The notes beneath the pieces were generated by a model that saw only the letters and a list, made by a program, of their open reading frames with translations, was not told where the DNA came from and searched no databases. A stretch of 64,000 nt of DNA, from the NCBI GenBank assembly GCA_946965045.2, contig OX337233.1:2046001-2110000 (forward strand), read 5' to 3'. A program made the position numbers and the translations under genes. Source of the DNA: Epithemia pelagica (lineage: Eukaryota > Protista > Bacillariophyta). Of the stretch, positions 1 to 10,086 are shown piece by piece (the first letter of the stretch is position 1; each line of letters opens with the position of its first letter).

Positions 1-88
1 TGTAGAGTTGTACCAGATCCTACGTAATCTTTTTATGCGACTAAAATAACCAAAAAAAAAACGTGAAGTATTTTCTTTCAGGAGGGAG

Positions 89-350
89 TACTCCTAGTGC
101 CTTACCTCCGGGTGTGCCCATTACGTGCGAAAATGTCCCGTTGGGCACAACATTTTAGGTAGATAGAACTCGATCAATATTAGCCCTACGACAATGATCT
201 GATGCATCTTACCAATCTTTAAGGCATCCTCTGTCACCATTTGATGCCCCATTTGGCCTACATAGGACATATGGGGGTCATAGGAGCGCCTCTACTAGAA
301 GCTTGTGGTGTGTGCAACGTGTGTGGGCACATTATGGGCACATTATAGAA
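89..350 (+). repeat. Left imperfect terminal inverted repeat with TGTGCCCA sub-repeats
   Basis: Shared blocks with the reverse complement of 8235-8508: GTGTGCCCATTAC, CCGTTGGGCACA, TAGATAGAAC, GATCAATATTAG, CATCCTCTGTCACCATT, GGTCATAGGAGC, TGTGGGCACAT. Confidence 0.85.
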
Positions 351-386
351 ACTCATGTAAAGCTCGGCTTTTAGACTTACTACGTC

Positions 387-1001
387 CTAGTATTCAAACT
401 TGTAGGCAACACTTGGCTCCTGAGTCTCAGAGAACTCAAAGGACAGGTTGCTATCGACACCAATTGACGAATTGCGCTTTCCAAATTTGCTGGACAAGTT
501 TTCATTGGATGAATCATTTTCATTATTGTCGTCATCAAAGTTGCTTGGCATTTCCACGGACTTCCTTACAGTATCGGAACATTGCTGATTGTTGCATGAT
601 GTCTCAATGTTCTTGAAGCGCATCGTCATCATCAAGTCAAAGCAAGGGGGGGACGGAGATGAGGACAACTTCTTCTCGGGTGCTGGATACAAAACAGCAA
701 CATGATTCTTTTGGGGGACAATCTTGGCATGCACCGTCTTGGCTTCCATATCCTTGAAATCTGAAACGTCCATCGCCACCTTCTCCTTTGCCTTCATGTT
801 CTTTTTCTTGGTTGCCACTGCCTTCTTAGTTTTCGTCGTCTTTTTGCGATGCGACAACCGGGACGCGGGTTGGTTGGAAACGGAAACAGAAGGAGCAAGA
901 ATGGAGCTTGTGCACTGCGAAGCTGCATCAGCTCCTGAGGCTGCTTTGATGCGCGCTTGATAGCGCAAACTTGTACGACGGCCGTTGATAGTTGTCGACA
1001 T
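387..1001 (-). CDS. Hypothetical Lys/Ser-rich 204-aa cargo ORF starting in cassette copy 1
   Basis: Open frame starting MST from the same CCACCATGTCGAC context as the CRD-only ORF. Contains a basic NLS-like stretch. No recognisable domain. Confidence 0.35.
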   Translation of the reverse strand: MSTTINGRRTSLRYQARIKAASGADAASQCTSSILAPSVSVSNQPASRLSHRKKTTKTKKAVATKKKNMKAKEKVAMDVSDFKDMEAKTVHAKIVPQKNHVAVLYPAPEKKLSSSPSPPCFDLMMTMRFKNIETSCNNQQCSDTVRKSVEMPSNFDDDNNENDSSNENLSSKFGKRNSSIGVDSNLSFEFSETQEPSVAYKFEY

Positions 1002-1245
1002 GGTGGTATTCTCTTTCGCGGTGGTGTAACAGGAGATCCACGGAAAATATGAGGCAGATGTGGGTCGTGTCGGTTGGAATAGGTTCCGAACGGACCAAAT
1101 GTCACGCCAGCCAACAAATTTTCCTTAATTAAGAAGTGCGCCATGAGGCGCGATGCCCGCACTCACAAATCTCAAAACGAACACACATACTAGAACTAAA
1201 GCAAACAAGAACAACAAGTTCTGGAGTAGTGCTGCACCCATCGAC
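993..1245. repeat. Duplicated bidirectional start cassette, copy 1
   Basis: Near-identical to 2959-3236. Provides a minus-strand ATG at 1001 (MST...) and a plus-strand ATG at 1153 (MPALTNLKTNTHTRTKANKNNKFWSSAAPID). Confidence 0.9.
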
Positions 1246-1812
1246 CGCCCCACGTCCCGTCGTGGGTGCCGTACAGGCCAAGAGGACTTTGGCCCATCCT
1301 GGCCACAAACCTTTGGGTGTGGCCGCGGACGAATAGTAACTGGTTCCCACCAAGGTGGATTCTTCTTCTTCGCCTTCATTGCGAATGATGGCGGTGGTAC
1401 GGCCAACAATCTCATAATGCAATTTCAAGCCGACATGCTCAATATTTCCGTGGTCAAACCCAAAATCAAGGAAACCACGTCGCTTGGTGTCGCCTTTTGT
1501 GCCGGATTGGCCATGCGAGTTTGGGACAGTATCGATGAAATAAAAACCTTGTGGGCCGTGTCCCAAAGCTACCTGCCCCGCATGACGGAGACGGAACGAC
1601 ACCGCAATTGGAGTGGATGGAACAAAGCGGTTTTGAAAAGTCTGGGGTGGATCGATCACAAAGACGAGGAGGAACAAACCGACAAGAGACTACGACTACC
1701 GCCCGAGTGGAGCAATTCACCCGTGGCAATCGGAACCGGTTCCTCCAGAACTGGTTTGGTGCTGGCTGGCTTTTTGGAGTCGTCGATGTGGTTGCTGCTC
1801 ATGACCGAATGA
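1153..1812 (+). pseudogene. Chimeric ORF: cassette N-terminus fused to a captured glycerol kinase C-terminal fragment (about 1355-1660)
   Basis: DGGGTANNLIMQFQADMLNISVVKPKIKETTSLGVAFCAGLAMRVW...WNKAVLKSLGW matches the FGGY_C end of glycerol kinase. The N-terminal catalytic half is absent. Confidence 0.8.
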
Positions 1813-2254
1813 CTCTTGCCATTCTTGGCTGCCGGAATCGCCTTGTTCTTGATGGGTTTCTGTGGCACTTCTTGCCGCAGACAAGACGGCTGTGGTGTCA
1901 TCAAACGACTCTTGTCGTTGATGTTGTCGTGGTCGTTGTTGCGGCTGTGGTGCTTCTTGGTGACTTGGACGTCGTTGTGTCGGTTGTGGTGCTTGTTGTT
2001 GTGGTTGTGGTGCCTTGTTGGAGGAGGAGACAAGCGCCAATTCGGCAGCCAATATCATTTGCTTGGTATCCTGATTTTCTTGAAAATATTTTTGCGCCAA
2101 CACATCGAGAATTTTTCAAAGAGTATATTGCGTTCGTCTTCATTCATGCCCGTGTGGTGGAATAGGACGGAACTTGCTGGACGACCCCTTGATCGTTTGA
2201 CTTGGCGACACTCTTGGTATTACTTTGGTGGGCCACCTTTTTGCCTATGTCAAT

Positions 2255-2960
2255 TTCAATATGACAATCAAGAAATTGACTATGTAGATATACTTGTAGT
2301 TCGAACTGTATGGATGTAACTTCAAATAGAACTATGTATTGGTCTTACCTAATCATGTATTGTGTATTTTCATTTTCATACTAAATCATAGAGCAATCGT
2401 CGTGAAATCAAGCTGTGTTCTGTTGTTGCATTCGGAATCTGTGCTCTTCAACACAGGTGCGGTTCATCCCAGGACGAATCCTGTTACCGTTGCATAGTCC
2501 AATACCTTTGATGGTCTTGATGATCTCGTCCGTTCCCGGTACCTTGCGGGTCTTCGTTTTAGCAAGACAAACAGGATGTGCGCAAATTGCTCTCGTCTTC
2601 ATAAAACAGATGACGCATCGACTTGTGCTTGGTTGTTCGTTGCCATCCGCATCCTGGACTTGTTCGGGATTTGGCATGGGCCTGTGAGACAAGTGAGACA
2701 AGAATCCAGCTGGTGGATCTCCAGAGTGGCAAAGAAGACACGACACAGTACCATCATCCTGAACTGTCAATGACTCTGCTGGGGAAACACTGGGGAGCGA
2801 ATCAACAACTGAAATCGGAGGGCATCTGCTCGAGCCAGCACCAGCAGTTGAGGCCCCGAACTGAGCCATAAACGCCTCCTCCGGCATCTTCTTCGCGTAT
2901 CGCATGGCCTGTTCTGTAGGCGACTCAGCGTCGACGACATTGGAAGCAATATTGGGGCTT
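2255..2960. repeat. Diverged internal duplicate of 3890-4645 (transposase 3' end plus downstream region)
   Basis: 2297-2436 is identical to 3940-4079 over 140 bp. The adjoining coding part is clearly diverged and has in-frame indels. Confidence 0.9.
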
Positions 2961-2968
2961 GTCGACAT
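2408..2968 (-). CDS. Stand-alone transposase C-terminal Cys-rich domain (CRD) protein, 186 aa
   Basis: Paralogous to the last ~200 aa of the transposase. Retains CVIC, CxHPxC, GLC and TCVEEH. Its ATG comes from cassette copy 2. Confidence 0.6.
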   Translation of the reverse strand: MSTSPNIASNVVDAESPTEQAMRYAKKMPEEAFMAQFGASTAGAGSSRCPPISVVDSLPSVSPAESLTVQDDGTVSCLLCHSGDPPAGFLSHLSHRPMPNPEQVQDADGNEQPSTSRCVICFMKTRAICAHPVCLAKTKTRKVPGTDEIIKTIKGIGLCNGNRIRPGMNRTCVEEHRFRMQQQNTA

Positions 2969-3236
2969 GGTGGTCTTCTTCTCTTTTGTGGTGTTGTTGT
3001 TCCTGTAACAGGAGATCCACGGAAAATATGAGGCCGATGTGTGTCGTGTCGGTTGGAATAGGTTCCGAACGGACCAAATGTCACGCCAGCCAACAAATTT
3101 TCCTTAATTAAGAAGTGCGCCATGAGGCGCGAAAAACTCGTCCATGCCCGCACTCACAAATCTCAAAACAAACACACATACTAGAACTAAAGCAAACAAG
3201 AACAACAAGTTCTGGAGTAGTGCTGCACCGATCGAC
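2959..3236. repeat. Duplicated bidirectional start cassette, copy 2
   Basis: Matches 993-1245 with an 11-bp insertion. Minus-strand ATG at 2968, plus-strand ATG at 3144. Confidence 0.9.
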
Positions 3237-3926
3237 AGACACAGTAGTTCTTTGGTGGAAAGACGGCACGACGGCAAGTAAGTAAACAATGCTGTTAGAA
3301 CTGTCTCCCCAACAAGCACTCACACTTGTTGCATCACTTTGTCCAGAAAGATGAATTCAACGAAAGGAAGCAAGAGGTTTGAGACGATGAAACTCGTCAA
3401 TGGGTTCACAGTGGTTTGTGATGGTGGTCAGTCGCTTGAAACAAAGGGGGAAACAGTGACAGTGTTTGGAGAAGCGGGGGTGAATGTGTACCTGAAGAGT
3501 GCCGGAGAATGTTCTGCTGATGGTCGGTTGATTGTTGATCGTGGTGTGTTGCTGTTGCAGCGAACTTATTTGTCTCGAGTCAACACGAATGCAGTCTCAA
3601 TTCGCTTCTTTGACCGCACCAAAAAGGATGATTCTGTCCCAGAGCTCGTCATCCCACTGCAATATATCAACAATCAACTTGATACGACGATTCTTCAGTC
3701 AAGTAGTGGCAAAGTTGTCAAGAGCAAGATCGTGATTGCTACGACACACTCACTTAACACCGTGATGACAATGGAGCCCATGGTTGTCACGGTTAAGATG
3801 AGTGTCGTTGGAGCCACGACGTTTCTGAAACTTCTCAACGAGAAGCTAGTATGCAAATCTGTTGAGGGAAAAGACGATGACAAGACTGCCAATATTGCGA
3901 TCAAGAAACTGACTACTCCTATGTAG
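3144..3926 (+). CDS. Two-exon hypothetical beta-rich cargo protein (~237 aa; exons 3144-3277 and 3347-3926)
   Basis: Open frame from MPALT at 3144. The GTAAGT donor at 3278 and CAG acceptor at 3346 join it in frame to the 3339-3926 ORF. No family recognised. Confidence 0.55.
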
Positions 3927-4050
3927 GATATACGTGCACTAGTTCGAACTGTATGGATGTAACTTCAAATAGAACTATGTATTGGTCTTACCTAATCATG
4001 TATTGTGTATTTTCATTTTCATACTAAATCATAGAGCAATCGTCGTGAAA

Positions 4051-7000
4051 TCAAGCTGTGTTCTGTTGTTGCATTCGGAGGATCTCCATTTGGAATCTGT
4101 GCTCTTCAACACAGGTGCGGGTCATCCCAGAACGAATCTTGTTATCGTTGCATAGTCCAATACCTTTGAGGGTCTTGGTCTCGTCCGTTCCCGGTACCTT
4201 GCGGGTCTTCGTTTTTGCAAGACAAGCAGGATGTCCGCAAAGTGCTCTCGTCTTCATGCGACAGATGACGCATCGACGTGCGCTTGGACGTATCTTGCCA
4301 TCCCCATCCTGGACTCGTTCGGGATTTGGGATGGGCTTTTGAGAAAAGACTCCAGATGGTGGAACTCCAGAGTCGCAAGGAATACACGCCGTGGCATCAT
4401 CATCCTGAACCGTCAATGACTCCGTTGGGGAAACGATGGGGTGCTGTGTGGATTGTAAATCAACAACTGAAATCGGAGGACATCGGCTCAAGCCAGGAGC
4501 ACTAGCAGTTGAGGCCCCAAACTGAGCCATAAACGCCTCCTCCAGCATCTGCTTTGCGAATTGTGTGGCCTGTTCTGTCAGCGACCTTTGCTGAAGTCCA
4601 GCAGTACCATCCTCAGCTTCAACGACATTTGAAGCAATATTGGGGCGGGCCTGACCTCGACGGTCAAGGTTGTTGTTTAACTGGTTGTGGGAAAGATCCC
4701 ATGCCAAACAATCTGCAAAATACTCCACTCCCGACGAGACTGGAGACTGCCTGCCACCCAAATGGTACTTGGTCGCCAAAAAACAATCAACCACCGTGAT
4801 ACCGATTATCGTGGTGATAAGCCTAAACCATGGGTTTGGCGTTTTCCACAGCATTTCAAGCCGCAACACACCCTGTCGAAGGTGATTGTGGACATCAATG
4901 AGATTGGCCGCTCCAAAATAGACAGACAAACATTTCGGCCGTAGGACGCGGCGCTCTCTGACGTTGCCATGTTCATCAGCGAACCTGGCCACGTAGGGGA
5001 GGCCAGGCTCCGTAGTCTCCGCATCTCTTGACATGGCGAAAAAGAGAGTCTTGCGTGAATTGTATTTGTATGCGATGGCAACCAGGTTGACGTTGGTACC
5101 TGGTGCCACGCTCTCCATCACAAGATACGATCCCGATGGAAAGGGTTCCATCTCCTTTTTCAATTCTTCTTGGGGGAACAAGCCATTGTTGGTTTTGATG
5201 GAACAAATGACTTCGGGCGCATCCTGGTTGTTCCCCCGCACTTTGTCTACACACAGAGTGTAGGTCCGACGATCACGAGCTGTCGGCTCTCGTGGTTCAC
5301 GGTACATGCACTTCATGGCTTCGACAAGCTTGACGCTGCCAAACCAAGAATCTGCACATACAAGGGGCCTTGTGCTTCCTTGGCTCTGAGCTTCAATACG
5401 CTCAAGCACTGACTGGCCAGAATATTCCGAGCCTTCCACCAATCGAAGCGACGTTCCTACCGTCATGCCTCCATCTGCCATAAACTTCTTGCGCCGCATT
5501 GGGATCTTCCCTTCCTGTATCTCAAGGAAGAGAAGACAACCTGTTGCTGTGTCACCAGAAACCTTTTTGAACAAAACAAACGACAATCAAACGGATGAGT
5601 TGGTCACCTGCAAAGGCAGTCAGTTTGGAAAAGCAAACATTACCTTGAACTCCGTCCCCAATGGTTTGGGTTTGCGTTGGACGTAAGACAAATGGGGGAG
5701 TGCTGATGTCTTCGTTGTCCGTGGTTGGAACGCGCACATTGCCTCATCCAACGTAATTGTTGATGAGGCGGCAACTGTTTTCCGACGGTTGCTGTTGAAA
5801 CCGTCAACCAGCGGTTTGATCTGGTTCCATTTCGCACCGTGGTTGTCCCCTTCAAAGGCACAGGGAAGAATCTCCTTGATGTCGAAGAACCGAGTCTTCG
5901 ACATGAGATCCATGCCACCTTTGCTGGCATTCACTTTCGGAGAAAACTGACGATGTGAAGTTGACGACGTATCATCGAAGAGCCGAATACCACCTTTGTG
6001 GCAGGGTGCCGCTCCGATAAGAATGCCCCACCATGCCCACCACTCATGCTCTGTGACGCAACGGATATGGCGGCTTCGGACTCTGCCCTGATTGCGTTCG
6101 TTGATTGCTTCATTCAACCTATGCAGCTGCTCTCGCCAACTCCCTGTAAGACAAACACGCCATTAATACTGAGACCCTTTTCACTGTGACACCAACAGGA
6201 AACTCGACAATCAACGACTTACCTGGCCACATGTGGATCAGCAGACGCAGGAATGGAAAGTCATAGCGTTGGTTTGTTGTAGACAAGTTGCTGTGAGCAA
6301 ATGACTGGCGAAAGTCAAAGCCAACAACACCAACACTCTCGAATTCTTCAACAAGGTTGTCGGGTACTGTATCGCCATCAACAATTTGCCAAGTGAAACT
6401 CCGATTGTCATAAATCTTGCGCAGGTCATTCCGGCCTGTAAGCGCTAGTGTCTCTTCCTCGTCTCCGTCGAAGAGCACATTCCACAAAGGAGTGCCAGGG
6501 ATACTATCCGGATGCTTTTCAACCACAATTCCGAAACGTGGATTGTTCCTTTTGTTCTCCCGGACTCTGTCGCCAATATCAATACCATTTTCGCTGGGTG
6601 GCTCGAGGGTCACTGTCCAGTTTTCTTCTATCAGTTGTTTCTTTCTGTTTATATAGTTTGTATACCTGTTCCTGTGCTCCTCCCTGCTCTCAATTTCGTG
6701 TGCGAGTGCCAAACTGTTAGGATCAATGGCATCCTCGTCGTCCGAAAACAAAAACAGATAGTCCTCCAAGTTGTTGAAGTAGTCATCCAACGACACGGCT
6801 GATGCATTATCCTCATCTGTTGTGTGTTGGAAAGTGCGACCAGAAAGGTTCTGGTCATTCCTCGCGACTTCACGTTCCTGCTGCTCCACTGCTGGTGGAC
6901 CAGCAATTCCAACGTCGGAAATCCAACTCCGGTCGTCGTCGTCATTGAGAATTGTCTCGACCACGTTGTGCGCGTCCTCACGAGTACGAACGACAGGGAC

Positions 7001-7798
7001 GGTATCACCACCACGCTGACCGTCACCACCTGCATCCCCATCCATGACTTGGGTGGGTTCACTCCTGGTGTTGCTCGAAGTGTTGTTTGTGTGTGTCGTG
7101 TGTTCTCGTTGTTCGGCGCTCGGGCCTGCCATTGCACTGTCCTGCCCGTTGTTGTTGTTGTTGTTCTGCTCATCTTCATCCTGAGCCTGTTCACGGTTGC
7201 TCAATGCCACAACTTCAAATCCCTCGTCATCATCTCTTGTATTCTTGGCCGTCATGGCAATGTGTTCTTGTTGTTGTGTTCTTTGATGTTACTGGTTGTG
7301 GTTCTCATTCCGCTGCTGCTGCTGACTACCACCCTGACGAGCAACAAGAACTTCAATACCTGTCTGATTCTCCCCTCCTTCTTGTTGAGGACCCTCGTTG
7401 TTGGCTGCACCAGATGATGCAAAGCTGTTAACAACAACCAAAGCCTCCTCCTCATTTGACGAGCCTTCTTGCTGTTGTTCTTGCCGTTGCTGTTGGTTGG
7501 AAGCAGCAGTGGTGGTAGTTGCTGTTGATGTTGGTGCTGTTGTTGCAGTTGTTCTTGCCACTGTCTGCTGCACTCGGTATTCCCCAGGAAAGCTATCGCC
7601 TCGTTGTATCTTCTTCAGCTGATAAGAGGTCTTGTTCATCAGCTCACCTGTTCTACTGCCATCCCTCTTGTCAAGCCGCTCAACTTCCCATGACTTGTTC
7701 GCAAGGGCTCGGACAATTATCACAGGTTCCTTGCTGCCTCTGAGAAATGCCCTGGACCCAGGACCCAACCGACCTGTTGTTCCAACACCTGCTGGCAT
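4051..7798 (-). CDS. piggyBac-family (DDE_Tnp_1_7/PGBD-like) transposase; exons 7798(or 7255)-6223, 6143-5644, 5562-4051; one in-frame TAA at 7289-7291
   Basis: Motifs TLDEAM...RKPKPLGTEFK, ADSWFGSV and IDVHNHLRQ give three candidate catalytic Asp, followed by a C-terminal Cys-rich domain. Two GT-AG introns (79 and 81 nt) restore HMWPGSWREQL and EFKVSGDTATG. Confidence 0.9.
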
Positions 7799-7886
7799 TT
7801 TCTTTCAGTGTCCTCGTGCTTGTTGTTGTTGTTGTTGTTGTCGTCGTCACCTGCACCTCGTTGTCCTTGTGCTCAAGAAATTGACA

Positions 7887-7915
7887 CTTTTGGTAATGAT
7901 CCTCATTACCAAAAG
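7887..7915. other. Perfect 13-bp stem, 3-nt loop hairpin upstream of the transposase ATG
   Basis: CTTTTGGTAATGA-TCC-TCATTACCAAAAG. Confidence 0.7.
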
Positions 7916-8234
7916 GTTCGATCTCATGAGCACATGCTCTTCATGATGAATAATCCCGATGGGGACTGTTCAAATGGAGGGAAAAACATGTAACTTGCCA
8001 TTGTGTGGTCGTCTGTCGTCAGTTGATCGTCACAATCTTTTCTACAAAAATTCCCCCCTGGTCCCCCATGGAGTTCCGATTGGTTCCGAATCAGCGCGGG
8101 TCCAGAGGAGTCCGGGACACGTTGAGAAAGCCGACCATGGCACAAAAAATGGCGCGAAAGTACTGCTTTGGATGCAGGTAACATCACGACGTCCTATCAT
8201 CGTCATAGGACTGTCATAGGACCTGCCGAAGCAA

Positions 8235-8508
8235 TGTGCCCACTATGTCCCCACATGTGCCCACATGTGCCCACATGTCAAAAATCGAGCACAACCCCCC
8301 AATGGAGATGCTCCTATGACCTAGATATGTCATATATGGGTGTCATGTGGTATCCAATGGTGACAGAGGATGTCTTGAAGAAAAAGTTTGGGCATCCACA
8401 TGTTGCCGTAGGCCTAATATTGATCATGTTCTATCTAGTTGAAAATATGTGCCCAACGGCCCATTTTGGCGTGTAATGGGCACACGGCTAGAGGAGGCAC
8501 TAGGAGTA
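8235..8508 (-). repeat. Right imperfect terminal inverted repeat; tandem ATGTGCCCAC units at about 8234-8278
   Basis: Inverse of the left TIR. The repeated TGTGCCCA-like motifs are candidate transposase binding sites. Confidence 0.85.
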
Positions 8509-8713
8509 GGAGTAGGAGTAAAGAAGAGAGACTCTTCCTTCGTTGGACCATAGCTGACATAGCTTTGCACGGTAGCTCTCCCACCATCCAACCCCAACTC
8601 CACTCCAAGCGGTATGCCCTGTCGACGATTTCATTGTCGAGGATCTGCATTGTGTCTTCGGTCTTTGGTGAGAAGGCGTTTCTATTTACCTACACCAACA
8701 TCTTCTTTTTCTC

Positions 8714-10086
8714 ATGGCATATACCCGACGTCTCTTGATTGGGTTGATCACGTCTCCTGCTGGCCTTTTTCATCGATCCCTCCGACCAGCCACATTGTCA
8801 AAACAGTGGGCACAATCGCATCTACACCATTTCCCGCGGAGTACAACAACCCCTTCGTTCTTTAGTCAGGGATCACTGAAGCGACGATCACACCCGAGCT
8901 CAGCATCCACTTTCCCGTACTACTCAACGAGTACAGCGTTGTTCCAAGCGAAAATGGGAACGTCCTCCAAGAAAAAGGTTTATGCTGTAGCGGTTGGTCG
9001 AAAAACTGGAATCTTTGACACATGGGATGAGTGTAACGCGCAGGTGAGTTAATTAAATATCCTTGATGACCTCCTGTCATCTACGAATATGTGGATTCAC
9101 TCTATGTGGTGTTGATGTACCTCATTTCATTGCAGGTTAAGGGCTTTTCGGGAGCAAAGTACAAATCCTTCCCTAAAAAGGAAGAGGCCCAGGCTTTCAT
9201 TGATCAAAATTCGGCATCCTCCAGTCAACCAGCAAAGAATGGATCGAAGAAACGAAGAGCAGATGACAAGGACGAAAGTCCACTGGAAGACACCAATGGT
9301 CGTAAACGTCGTCGGCACCTTCCGACTCCAACCAAAATCGTTCACGTCAAAATCCATGTCATGTTTGATGGTGGTTCCAGAGGCAATCCAGGAAAAGCGG
9401 GAGCAGGAGCGATTGTCACGTCTATGGAAACGCCTTTACAATCTATCATCAAGTCAGAGACAGCGGGGACACCACCAAAACCCGAGGTTGCCACAAAAGA
9501 ATGGCAAAATAGATACGTGACCAAAATTAGAGACTACCTGGGTGACAGTGGAACAAACAATCAAGCCGAATATCAAGGCCTCTGTACTGGCTTGAAACAG
9601 GCAATTGACGATCTACATCGTGTTGTCCAGAGCTACGACTCGTCATCATCCGATGATCACGTCATACACTTTGATGTAGAATGTATCGTGGAAGGGGATT
9701 CGGAGCTCATCATACGTCAGATCACTGGAGAGTATAAATGCAACGATAAACTGAAGCCGTTTCTCAAACGGGCTAAGAGATACGAGGAAATGATGAAGAC
9801 GATGTTGACCACTAACGAGAACAGACAAGGTTCGGTGGACATTGTGTTTCAACATGTGGAGCGAGCCCGAAACTCCATTGCAGATGGTATGTGTCTTCTC
9901 TTTTGATAGAGCTGGGCATGATCCTTTGACTCATCCCTTTTCTACGTCGGTTTACTGTTACCTGTTCTTATTCTTTACTTTCTTTGGATCGAGACAGGAC
10001 TAGCCAATGAAGCAATGAGCGCACGAAGAAGTTGGTCTACCGTTACTGTGGACGGAGAGGAACTAAATGAGCGCAATGATGCCTGA
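8714..10086 (+). CDS. Ribonuclease H (viroplasmin/hybrid-binding N-domain plus RNase HI-like domain), 3 exons, with putative organellar presequence
   Basis: VYAVAVGRKTGIFDTWDECNAQ|VKGFSGAKYKSF; FDGGSRGNPG, TNNQAEYQGL, EGDSELIIRQ, RNSIADGLANEAM. Introns at about 9043-9135 and 9888-9996. A second in-frame ATG lies at 8954. Confidence 0.9.

Follow-up and report, generated by a model that had tools for sequence, protein, structure and literature searches.

A CTAG-flanked piggyBac-type element of the diatom Epithemia pelagica with two accessory genes and an apparent single capture of host gene fragments

Introduction

Several DNA transposons encode accessory proteins in addition to a transposase, as in PIF/Harbinger (a Myb-like open reading frame [ORF] and the transposase), MuDR (mudrA/mudrB), and En/Spm, and the KP repressor of the P element is a regulator made of truncated transposase. 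The usual picture of a piggyBac element is that of a single gene inserted at TTAA. Here, we describe a family that departs from this picture in having CTAG flanks and two accessory genes. Its representative is an 8,410-bp piggyBac-type element at positions 94 to 8503 of a 64,000-nucleotide stretch of the genome of the diatom Epithemia pelagica (GenBank assembly GCA_946965045.2, contig OX337233.1, forward-strand positions 2,046,001 to 2,110,000; this whole stretch is called the window, and coordinates refer to it unless another locus is named). The sequence makes it very likely that we are dealing with a three-gene, CTAG-flanked piggyBac lineage, one sub-lineage of which records a series of events: one internal duplication, one capture of host DNA, and the exchange of the resulting module between transposase backbones, followed by spread.

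As in Harbinger, MuDR, and En/Spm, further conserved genes appear to travel and co-evolve with the transposase in this family; unlike in those systems, the carrier belongs to the piggyBac superfamily, and the accessory proteins are one with a predicted PH-like fold and one that is basic and disordered. The element also has an ORF predicted to contain only a DNA-binding part of the transposase, as KP does. Unlike in KP, this part is the C-terminal Cys-rich domain (CRD), which stems from a duplication junction and has no selection signal. Another natural piggyBac-type element with genes besides the transposase is Teratorn, in which a piggyBac-like element is fused with a herpesvirus and carries a 40- to 180-kb viral genome as cargo (PMC6431247); the diatom element carries, instead, two small cellular-type genes and about 1 kb of host gene scraps.

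The Pack-MULE, Pack-CACTA, and Pack-TYPE elements of plants are nonautonomous, and many different captures are spread over the members of a family (PMC8903248; reviewed in PMC13317346). As in Pack elements, a cut-and-paste transposon here contains between its ends a chimera of fragments from unlinked host genes, which has been amplified along with it. Unlike in Pack elements, the carrier is an apparently autonomous piggyBac-type element, one capture is present in all copies, and that capture seems to have replaced the element's own duplicated accessory gene. In a limited literature search, whose silence counts only weakly as evidence of absence, no piggyBac element was reported to have captured pieces of host genes or to carry an accessory gene of the PH-like kind. 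Within the reach of that search, no clear Pack-like capture by a piggyBac-type element precedes this one, and it is a concrete example from an organism that is not a plant and from a superfamily other than Mutator and CACTA.

A mobile element present in seven copies

Two units lie in tandem within the element. Each begins with a copy of a divergent start region, referred to here as the cassette (copy 1, positions 992 to 1252; copy 2, positions 2959 to 3243), and contains a copy of a convergent 3′ block. An earlier prediction made from the letters of the window alone (the original prediction) had correctly placed this layout inside a piggyBac element but interpreted it as a modular platform, in which one bidirectional cassette, used twice, would launch four different ORFs. 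We used the cassette and the 3′ block as queries against the source genome (60.5 Mb in 23 contigs), and both led to the identical 14 places, which form seven pairs. All seven loci, spread over five contigs, align to the window from end to end across positions 94 to 8503, and their flanking DNA diverges directly beyond CTAG, which stands at both edges of the element (94 to 97 and 8500 to 8503). Five copies that are ~99% identical (the window copy, one on contig 9, two on contig 4, and one on contig 2) form subfamily A, and the two others, on contigs 2 and 1, form subfamily B, which is ~86% identical to subfamily A. Since the layout recurs in seven copies, each at its own locus and in its own flanking DNA, both a chance match and an assembly artifact are excluded, and the duplicated layout belongs to a mobile piggyBac-type element of 8.4 kb and not to a single locus.

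The features of the piggyBac superfamily were found in the element, namely, a DDE_Tnp_1_7 domain, a C-terminal Cys-rich domain of the cross-brace zinc finger type, terminal inverted repeats (TIRs), and multiple copies with unrelated flanks. The termini consist of imperfect TIRs of ~56 bp together with ~250 bp of subterminal inverted similarity; the left 250 bp and the right end are 73% identical in inverse orientation. A TTAA target-site duplication was absent from all seven copies, which have CTAG on both sides instead. This CTAG may be either a duplicated target or a part of the element end; no empty site for the element was found. Judged from its reading frames, the element is autonomous, as it encodes its own transposase, the exons of which are open in four of the five subfamily A copies.

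One subfamily A copy (contig 2, about positions 1606500 to 1614890) is interrupted by a nested long terminal repeat (LTR) retrotransposon of 8,382 bp, with 781-bp LTRs that are 99.87% identical. This insertion sits at the equivalent of window position ~1845 to 1851, with a repeated GTTCTTG on either side. The genome also contains short derivatives, ~1.6 kb long where both ends are seen, that combine the left ~360 bp of the element (92 to 94% identical) with its right end and are without its genes (among the matches listed, C7:3526006-3527608, C1:1315952-1317556, C1:3950873-3952456, C13:1144184, C3:3192043-3193641, and others). These look like nonautonomous relatives of the element.

Two accessory genes shared with single-unit relatives

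Relatives without the second unit occur on contigs 4 and 11 of the source genome (L015 and L031), in ERZ21939226 (L059, L060, and L063), and in GCA_051400955.1 (L067), and further ones are known from listed matches alone (e.g., C2:132869, C1:660198, and C8:181708). Their order is the left end, an ORF204 homologue on the minus strand, an intergenic region, the PH-like gene on the plus strand, and the convergent transposase gene on the minus strand; L063 and L067 were checked for the gene-transposase pair only. In L015 (C4:1196559-1199637), the PH-like gene is frameshifted. A deletion derivative, L016 (C10:1794548-1797635), has the first ~20 codons of the PH-like gene joined to mid-transposase sequence.

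ORF204 (387 to 1001, minus strand) encodes a basic, low-complexity accessory protein of 204 amino acids (aa). It is intact in all seven copies and has homologues at the same position in four lineages (L015, L016, L059, and L060), with 26 to 46% identity and with conserved termini (INGRR.SLR at the N terminus and DSNLSF..TQEP at the C terminus). The ratio of nonsynonymous to synonymous divergence (dN/dS) is 0.28 to 0.47 against these relatives and 0.65, which is not significant, between subfamilies A and B. The only Pfam match for ORF204 was a sub-threshold, low-complexity one to SR-25.

The second accessory gene (3351 to 3926, plus strand, within an ORF spanning 3339 to 3926) encodes a protein of 191 aa, the beta-rich protein of the original prediction, and is likewise intact in all seven copies. 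Its dN/dS between subfamilies A and B is 0.27 (15.5 nonsynonymous and 15.5 synonymous changes; P = 0.0018), and against the contig 11 relative it is 0.13, compared to 0.11 for the transposase over the same distance. Clear purifying selection is seen for this gene alone. The amino acid identities of the PH-like protein and of the last transposase exon to their counterparts in relatives run in parallel (70 and 70%, 62 and 56%, 45 and 41%, and 40 and 42%, respectively). The comparisons point to an ancestral accessory gene that co-diverged with the transposase and not to cargo, and across the lineages, such co-divergence of the accessory genes extends down to 25 to 40% protein identity.

A word-based search with the PH-like protein returned seven close proteins only, and an exhaustive profile search returned 30 representatives among 1.8 billion. 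We modeled the structure by AlphaFold2 with 23 aligned members; an earlier alignment of 6 sequences had given a predicted local distance difference test score (pLDDT) of 34 and was discarded. The resulting model (pLDDT, 86; predicted template modeling score, 0.81) is a beta sandwich followed by one long helix (residues 152 to 171), in line with the PH-like superfold, in which a C-terminal helix caps a sandwich of seven strands. Compared with 48,161 solved chains using VIA-align, it gave Z scores of 9 to 11.7 with 100 to 126 residues aligned, and the matches listed are PH-superfold domains (RanBD, EVH1, Dcp1, pICln, TFIIH p62, and the Vps36 GLUE domain). Foldseek (E values of 1e-3 to 0.1), together with the ESM Atlas, agrees weakly with a PH fold; the ESM Atlas feature search by itself gave no lead (scores of ≤0.81). 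The model thus predicts a PH-like fold for the 191-aa protein. None of the 23 members has a Pfam match, and the profile found no sequence match in the PDB, so that by sequence neither accessory protein matches a described family. Both could be transposition cofactors, a guess that we base on the second ORFs known from Harbinger and MuDR.

Distant members of the PH-like family were found in several contexts. In L067 (8001 to 11813), a PH-like gene of 25% identity is followed by a convergent, intron-containing piggyBac-type transposase gene; since this pairing occurs in a different genome, the pair seems to be old and to extend beyond one species. A member of 24% identity is present in six identical copies (L064 to L066, 8001 to 8558, ERZ21939226) and adjoins a gene for a 986-aa SET-domain protein in two of the three loci examined. 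Another member (L062, 8001 to 8498, ERZ21939226; 33% identity over the 116 matched residues) lies among ordinary cellular genes with no transposase nearby and could be either a relic or a copy that belongs to the host or has been domesticated.

A conserved divergent start region

The two cassette copies match each other in three blocks: 992 to 1027 with 2959 to 2994 (78%), 1025 to 1153 with 3004 to 3132 (98%), and 1153 to 1252 with 3144 to 3243 (95%). By BLAST, 1025 to 1245 and 3004 to 3236 are 93% identical, with two 12-nucleotide (nt) indels, one of which lies near the left edge. The divergent ATGs are 152 bp apart in copy 1 (1001 on the minus strand and 1153 on the plus strand) and 176 bp apart in copy 2 (2968 on the minus strand and 3144 on the plus strand). 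The cassette pair, its divergent ATGs, and the ORFs named with them were all recovered by the repeat search, BLAST, and the ORF list. Copy 1 ends just short of the intron in the 5′ untranslated region of the PH-like gene; copy 2, from the repeat alignment, is in the ancestral position preceding that gene.

The intron (3278 to 3346, plus strand; 69 nt, GT-AG) has a GTAAGT donor, a CTCAC branch-like motif, and a CAG acceptor located 4 nt upstream of the PH-like ATG at 3351. The donor, the branch-like motif, and the acceptor all align in subfamily B, L015, L031, L016, and L059. Upstream of it, the alignment of the intergenic regions shows a conserved noncoding core of 80 to 90 bp (1050 to 1140 in copy 1 and about 3030 to 3125 in copy 2), which is 89% identical to L015 over 80 bp; a short CTCACAAAT-type motif is also conserved. 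The distance between the ATGs of ORF204 and the PH-like gene is 310 to 390 bp in five lineages and 267 bp in L060. As the synonymous sites of the neighboring genes are saturated over the same distances (synonymous divergence [dS], 1.6 to 1.9) while the core stays 89% identical, the core is under constraint.

The cassette is thus the ancestral spacer that separates the two conserved accessory genes, and the earlier view of it as a conserved divergent start region, with a 5′ intron kept in relatives, holds. The spacer has the layout expected of a bidirectional promoter, namely, divergent genes at a distance of less than 1 kb and conserved sequence between them, and we infer that this ~350-bp region serves as a shared divergent promoter and that unit 1 would be transcribed from its own copy. 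Being compact and conserved, this putative promoter is a candidate tool for diatom transformation.

The plus-strand ATG of each cassette copy had further been proposed to open a shared coding leader, which starts with MPALT. The frame of this leader has a stop at codon 12 in both cassettes of subfamily B; L015 and L016 read another frame that ends in a stop, and L031 has no ATG there. To judge from these sequences, the MPALT leader is not a conserved coding exon. In the window, removal of the 69-nt intron leaves MPALT and the ATG at 3351 in one reading frame, which would give the ~237-aa spliced product of the original prediction; the intron is conserved, but the 237-aa frame is open in subfamily A only (with the exons examined separately). 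Since the MPALT frame is not conserved, the beta-rich protein most likely starts at 3351 and has 191 aa.

An internal tandem duplication

As the original prediction had stated, the two units share a convergent block of 140 nt that is 100% identical (2297 to 2436 and 3940 to 4079). Copy 2 of this 3′ block is the convergent 3′ region of the PH-like and transposase genes and includes the last 9 transposase codons. Copy 1 is preceded by a remnant of the PH-like coding sequence (its last ~25 nt, from about 2258), and together, they (2258 to 2436) align with 3897 to 4079. Past the block, homology continues between 2437 to 2958 and 4080 to 4646 (82 to 93% identity); on the minus strand, this stretch encodes the Cys-rich C-terminal portion of the transposase. 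The junction at 2958/2959 puts the Cys-rich sequence immediately next to the tenth base of ORF204, in codon 4. A head-to-tail duplication of 2959 to 4646 predicts just this junction, so the proposed tandem duplication of the cassette, gene, 3′ block, and CRD fits exactly.

Compared with the subfamily A block, the 3′ blocks of subfamily B show 95% identity in unit 1 and 85% in unit 2. The sequences suggest recent gene conversion at the 140-nt block within subfamily A.

The junction also creates an ORF of 186 aa (2408 to 2968, minus strand), in which the first 3 codons of ORF204 (MST) are in frame with the last 183 codons of the transposase. This CRD-only ORF is intact in all seven copies. It keeps every Cys and His position and 27 of the 30 positions that are invariant among five transposases; the other three have changed. 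Its dN/dS is 1.2 between subfamilies A and B, based on 10 differences and thus of low power, and 0.96 against the resident transposase. Pfam gave no match for the CRD-only ORF.

Host gene fragments in unit 1

In unit 1, the cassette extends to position ~1245, and the surviving tail of the PH-like coding sequence begins near 2258; the interval between them is made up of four donor pieces. The first (1240 to 1384, minus strand) is an antisense fragment of a host gene on contig 16 (588-aa ORF), 83% identical to L056 positions 1188 to 1338. It is followed by a sense fragment (1387 to 1708, plus strand) of a glycerol kinase gene on contig 3 (689-aa ORF), 88% identical to L055 positions 1501 to 1829, and by the segment that comes next in this kinase gene, which has been inverted without leaving its place (1708 to 1871, minus strand; 84% identical to the reverse complement of L055 positions 1837 to 2003). 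The fourth piece (1874 to 2249, minus strand) is again antisense and from the contig 16 gene, with 81% identity to L056 positions 1501 to 1887. The predicted replacement of cargo is therefore borne out for the interior of unit 1, which is made of contig 3 kinase and contig 16 gene sequence, and not for the beta-rich protein of unit 2, which is the ancestral gene.

The patchwork, drawn from two unlinked host genes, has five junctions, the first with 6 to 8 bases of imperfect microhomology and the others with 0 to 3 bases. Such a pattern is what template switching during repair would give, as proposed for Pack-type capture, and in this respect the junctions resemble those of Pack elements. Host gene fragments between element ends are also as expected of a Pack-type element. 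The different captures per member that would likewise be expected were not found, as all seven copies hold the same capture and relatives hold the PH-like gene alone.

Chimeric ORF219 (1153 to 1812, plus strand; 219 aa) runs from the MPALT leader through contig 16 antisense sequence into the C-terminal fragment of the kinase, and its residues 76 to 121 match Pfam FGGY_C, the end of the carbohydrate kinase C-domain (E = 1.9e-9). The glycerol kinase fusion had been predicted as an encoded protein. It is intact in the five near-identical subfamily A copies only, with 97 kinase-derived codons, and broken in subfamily B, where the leader has stops and the kinase frame, with an in-frame 18-nt deletion, is open without an upstream ATG. 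A C-terminal piece of 97 residues cannot be a kinase. The dN/dS of the fragment is 0.74 between subfamilies A and B and 0.17 to 0.25 against the parent gene.

Exchange of the module between two backbones

The seven copies are a mosaic. Over the left 3.9 kb, subfamilies A and B are 90 to 97% identical, with dS values of 0.016 for the CRD-only ORF, 0.04 for ORF204, 0.05 for the kinase piece, and 0.14 for the PH-like gene. From about position 3990 onward, the identity is 50 to 78%, and the transposase has a dS of 1.1 to 2.1. The similar left module beside a divergent transposase part indicates that the module was exchanged between two transposase lineages by recombination, and the sequences place the breakpoint at the end of the PH-like gene. 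Strong constraint on the left module as the source of its high identity was ruled out, since pseudogenic and synonymous sites are equally similar (dS, 0.016 to 0.05).

A proposed origin of the module

Taken in sequence, the events would be as follows. An internal tandem duplication of ~1.7 kb would have taken place in the ancestor of the seven copies, comprising the first 10 nt of ORF204, the promoter, the PH-like gene, the 3′ region, and the last 183 transposase codons. This would have yielded a second promoter copy and, in frame across the junction, the ORF that joins MST to the Cys-rich DNA-binding domain. Filler DNA of about 1 kb would then have replaced the coding part of the upstream PH-like gene; its copying, which would have involved four template switches, drew on the contig 16 gene (antisense) and the glycerol kinase gene (part sense and part inverted). 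Later, inter-element recombination would have put the finished module onto two transposase backbones (dS of >1), and transposition would finally have spread the result, leaving five copies at ~99% and two at ~86% identity.

Three points weigh against this series of events, which we nevertheless consider very likely overall. That duplication came before replacement is the most economical reading but is not demonstrated. An extra gene conversion event is needed to explain why the 140-bp block is 100% identical beside neighbors at 82 to 93%. Lastly, the dN/dS of the kinase fragment against its parent is lower than simple neutral decay predicts, and therefore, the true donor may be another functional allele or species, or the fragment may have been constrained for a time.

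A different view, unlikely in our estimation, is that the module was kept because of a benefit: the CRD-only protein would compete for element ends in the manner of a KP-like dominant negative, and/or unit 1 RNA would feed small-RNA pathways. The intactness of the CRD-only ORF in every copy, with all Cys and His residues and its own copy of the start region, agrees with this view, as do the presence of the module on two different transposase backbones and the exact matches of 21 to 55 nt between unit 1 and both host genes. The piggyBac CRD is also known to bind transposon ends sequence specifically and to be essential for transposition (PMC5861402, PMC7351741). However, the dN/dS values of the CRD-only ORF give no sign of constraint, an intact frame of 186 codons is expected by chance at 2 to 3% divergence, and the three changed positions are invariant in transposases. 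The fuller scenario, in which copy 2 drives a CRD protein that tunes transposition and copy 1 drives a chimeric RNA, antisense to the contig 16 gene and with sense and inverted kinase pieces, for small-RNA regulation, and the module thereby passed to two lineages, seems quite improbable to us. If it were true, a piggyBac clade with a PH-like cofactor would have turned a duplication and a capture into a regulatory device of its own. The element also offers a natural stand-alone Cys-rich domain with which the restraint of piggyBac-type transposition could be examined.

There is little to recommend the idea of a Pack-type gene-shuffling platform that takes up cargo repeatedly and encodes four proteins, two of them sharing the MPALT leader. 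One real two-gene capture does sit exactly between the cassette and the 3′ block, and in subfamily A, no stop separates the MPALT frame from either downstream ORF. That frame is nevertheless stopped, shifted, or without ATG in subfamily B and the relatives, as described above; the kinase piece is a fragment; the element appears to be autonomous, which Pack elements are not; and two of the four ORFs show no constraint. When the genomic copies were compared behind each ATG, as the original prediction had proposed, the same cargo was present in all seven. The searches of the source genome gave only these copies and single-unit relatives, with no other cargo behind the cassette or before the 3′ block. 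A single duplication-and-capture accident, not a reusable cargo system, is what the element seems to record.

An assembly misjoin, a chance repeat, or a deleted element nested in a full one, for which only the internal repeat itself speaks, has almost no chance of being correct, because the same internal junctions occur in seven copies with unique flanks on five contigs (the original prediction had itself raised a unique arrangement or an assembly artifact as a danger) and because the junction lies inside codon 4 of ORF204 and inside the transposase, as a head-to-tail duplication predicts. A nested insertion was also considered as the origin of unit 1 and was ruled out, as neither a TIR nor CTAG is present at 2958/2959.

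Transposase gene and neighboring features

The transposase is encoded on the minus strand. Its last exon (4051 to 5586) contains the C-terminal half and the Cys-rich domain and has 70% amino acid identity and the dN/dS of 0.11 given above in comparison with the contig 11 relative. The DDE_Tnp_1_7 domain (Pfam PF13843; E = 4.1e-8) is in the exon at 5620 to 6117, and precomputed matches to the same domain exist for the transposases of L059 and L063. No Pfam model matched the Cys-rich domain, the Cys/His pattern of which is conserved in an alignment of five transposases and the CRD-only ORF. From the ORF layout, the N-terminal region spans 6119 to 7804. Here, the window copy alone has a stop codon (7289 to 7291, minus strand), reading TAA where the other four subfamily A copies read CAA, and it is probably unable to make a full-length transposase.

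An Rfam scan of positions 1 to 9000 gave no match in the cassette; the only matches, sub-threshold and miRNA-like, were at a hairpin near the start of the transposase region (7868 to 7934). This hairpin has 32-nt arms that are 84% complementary and a 3-nt loop.

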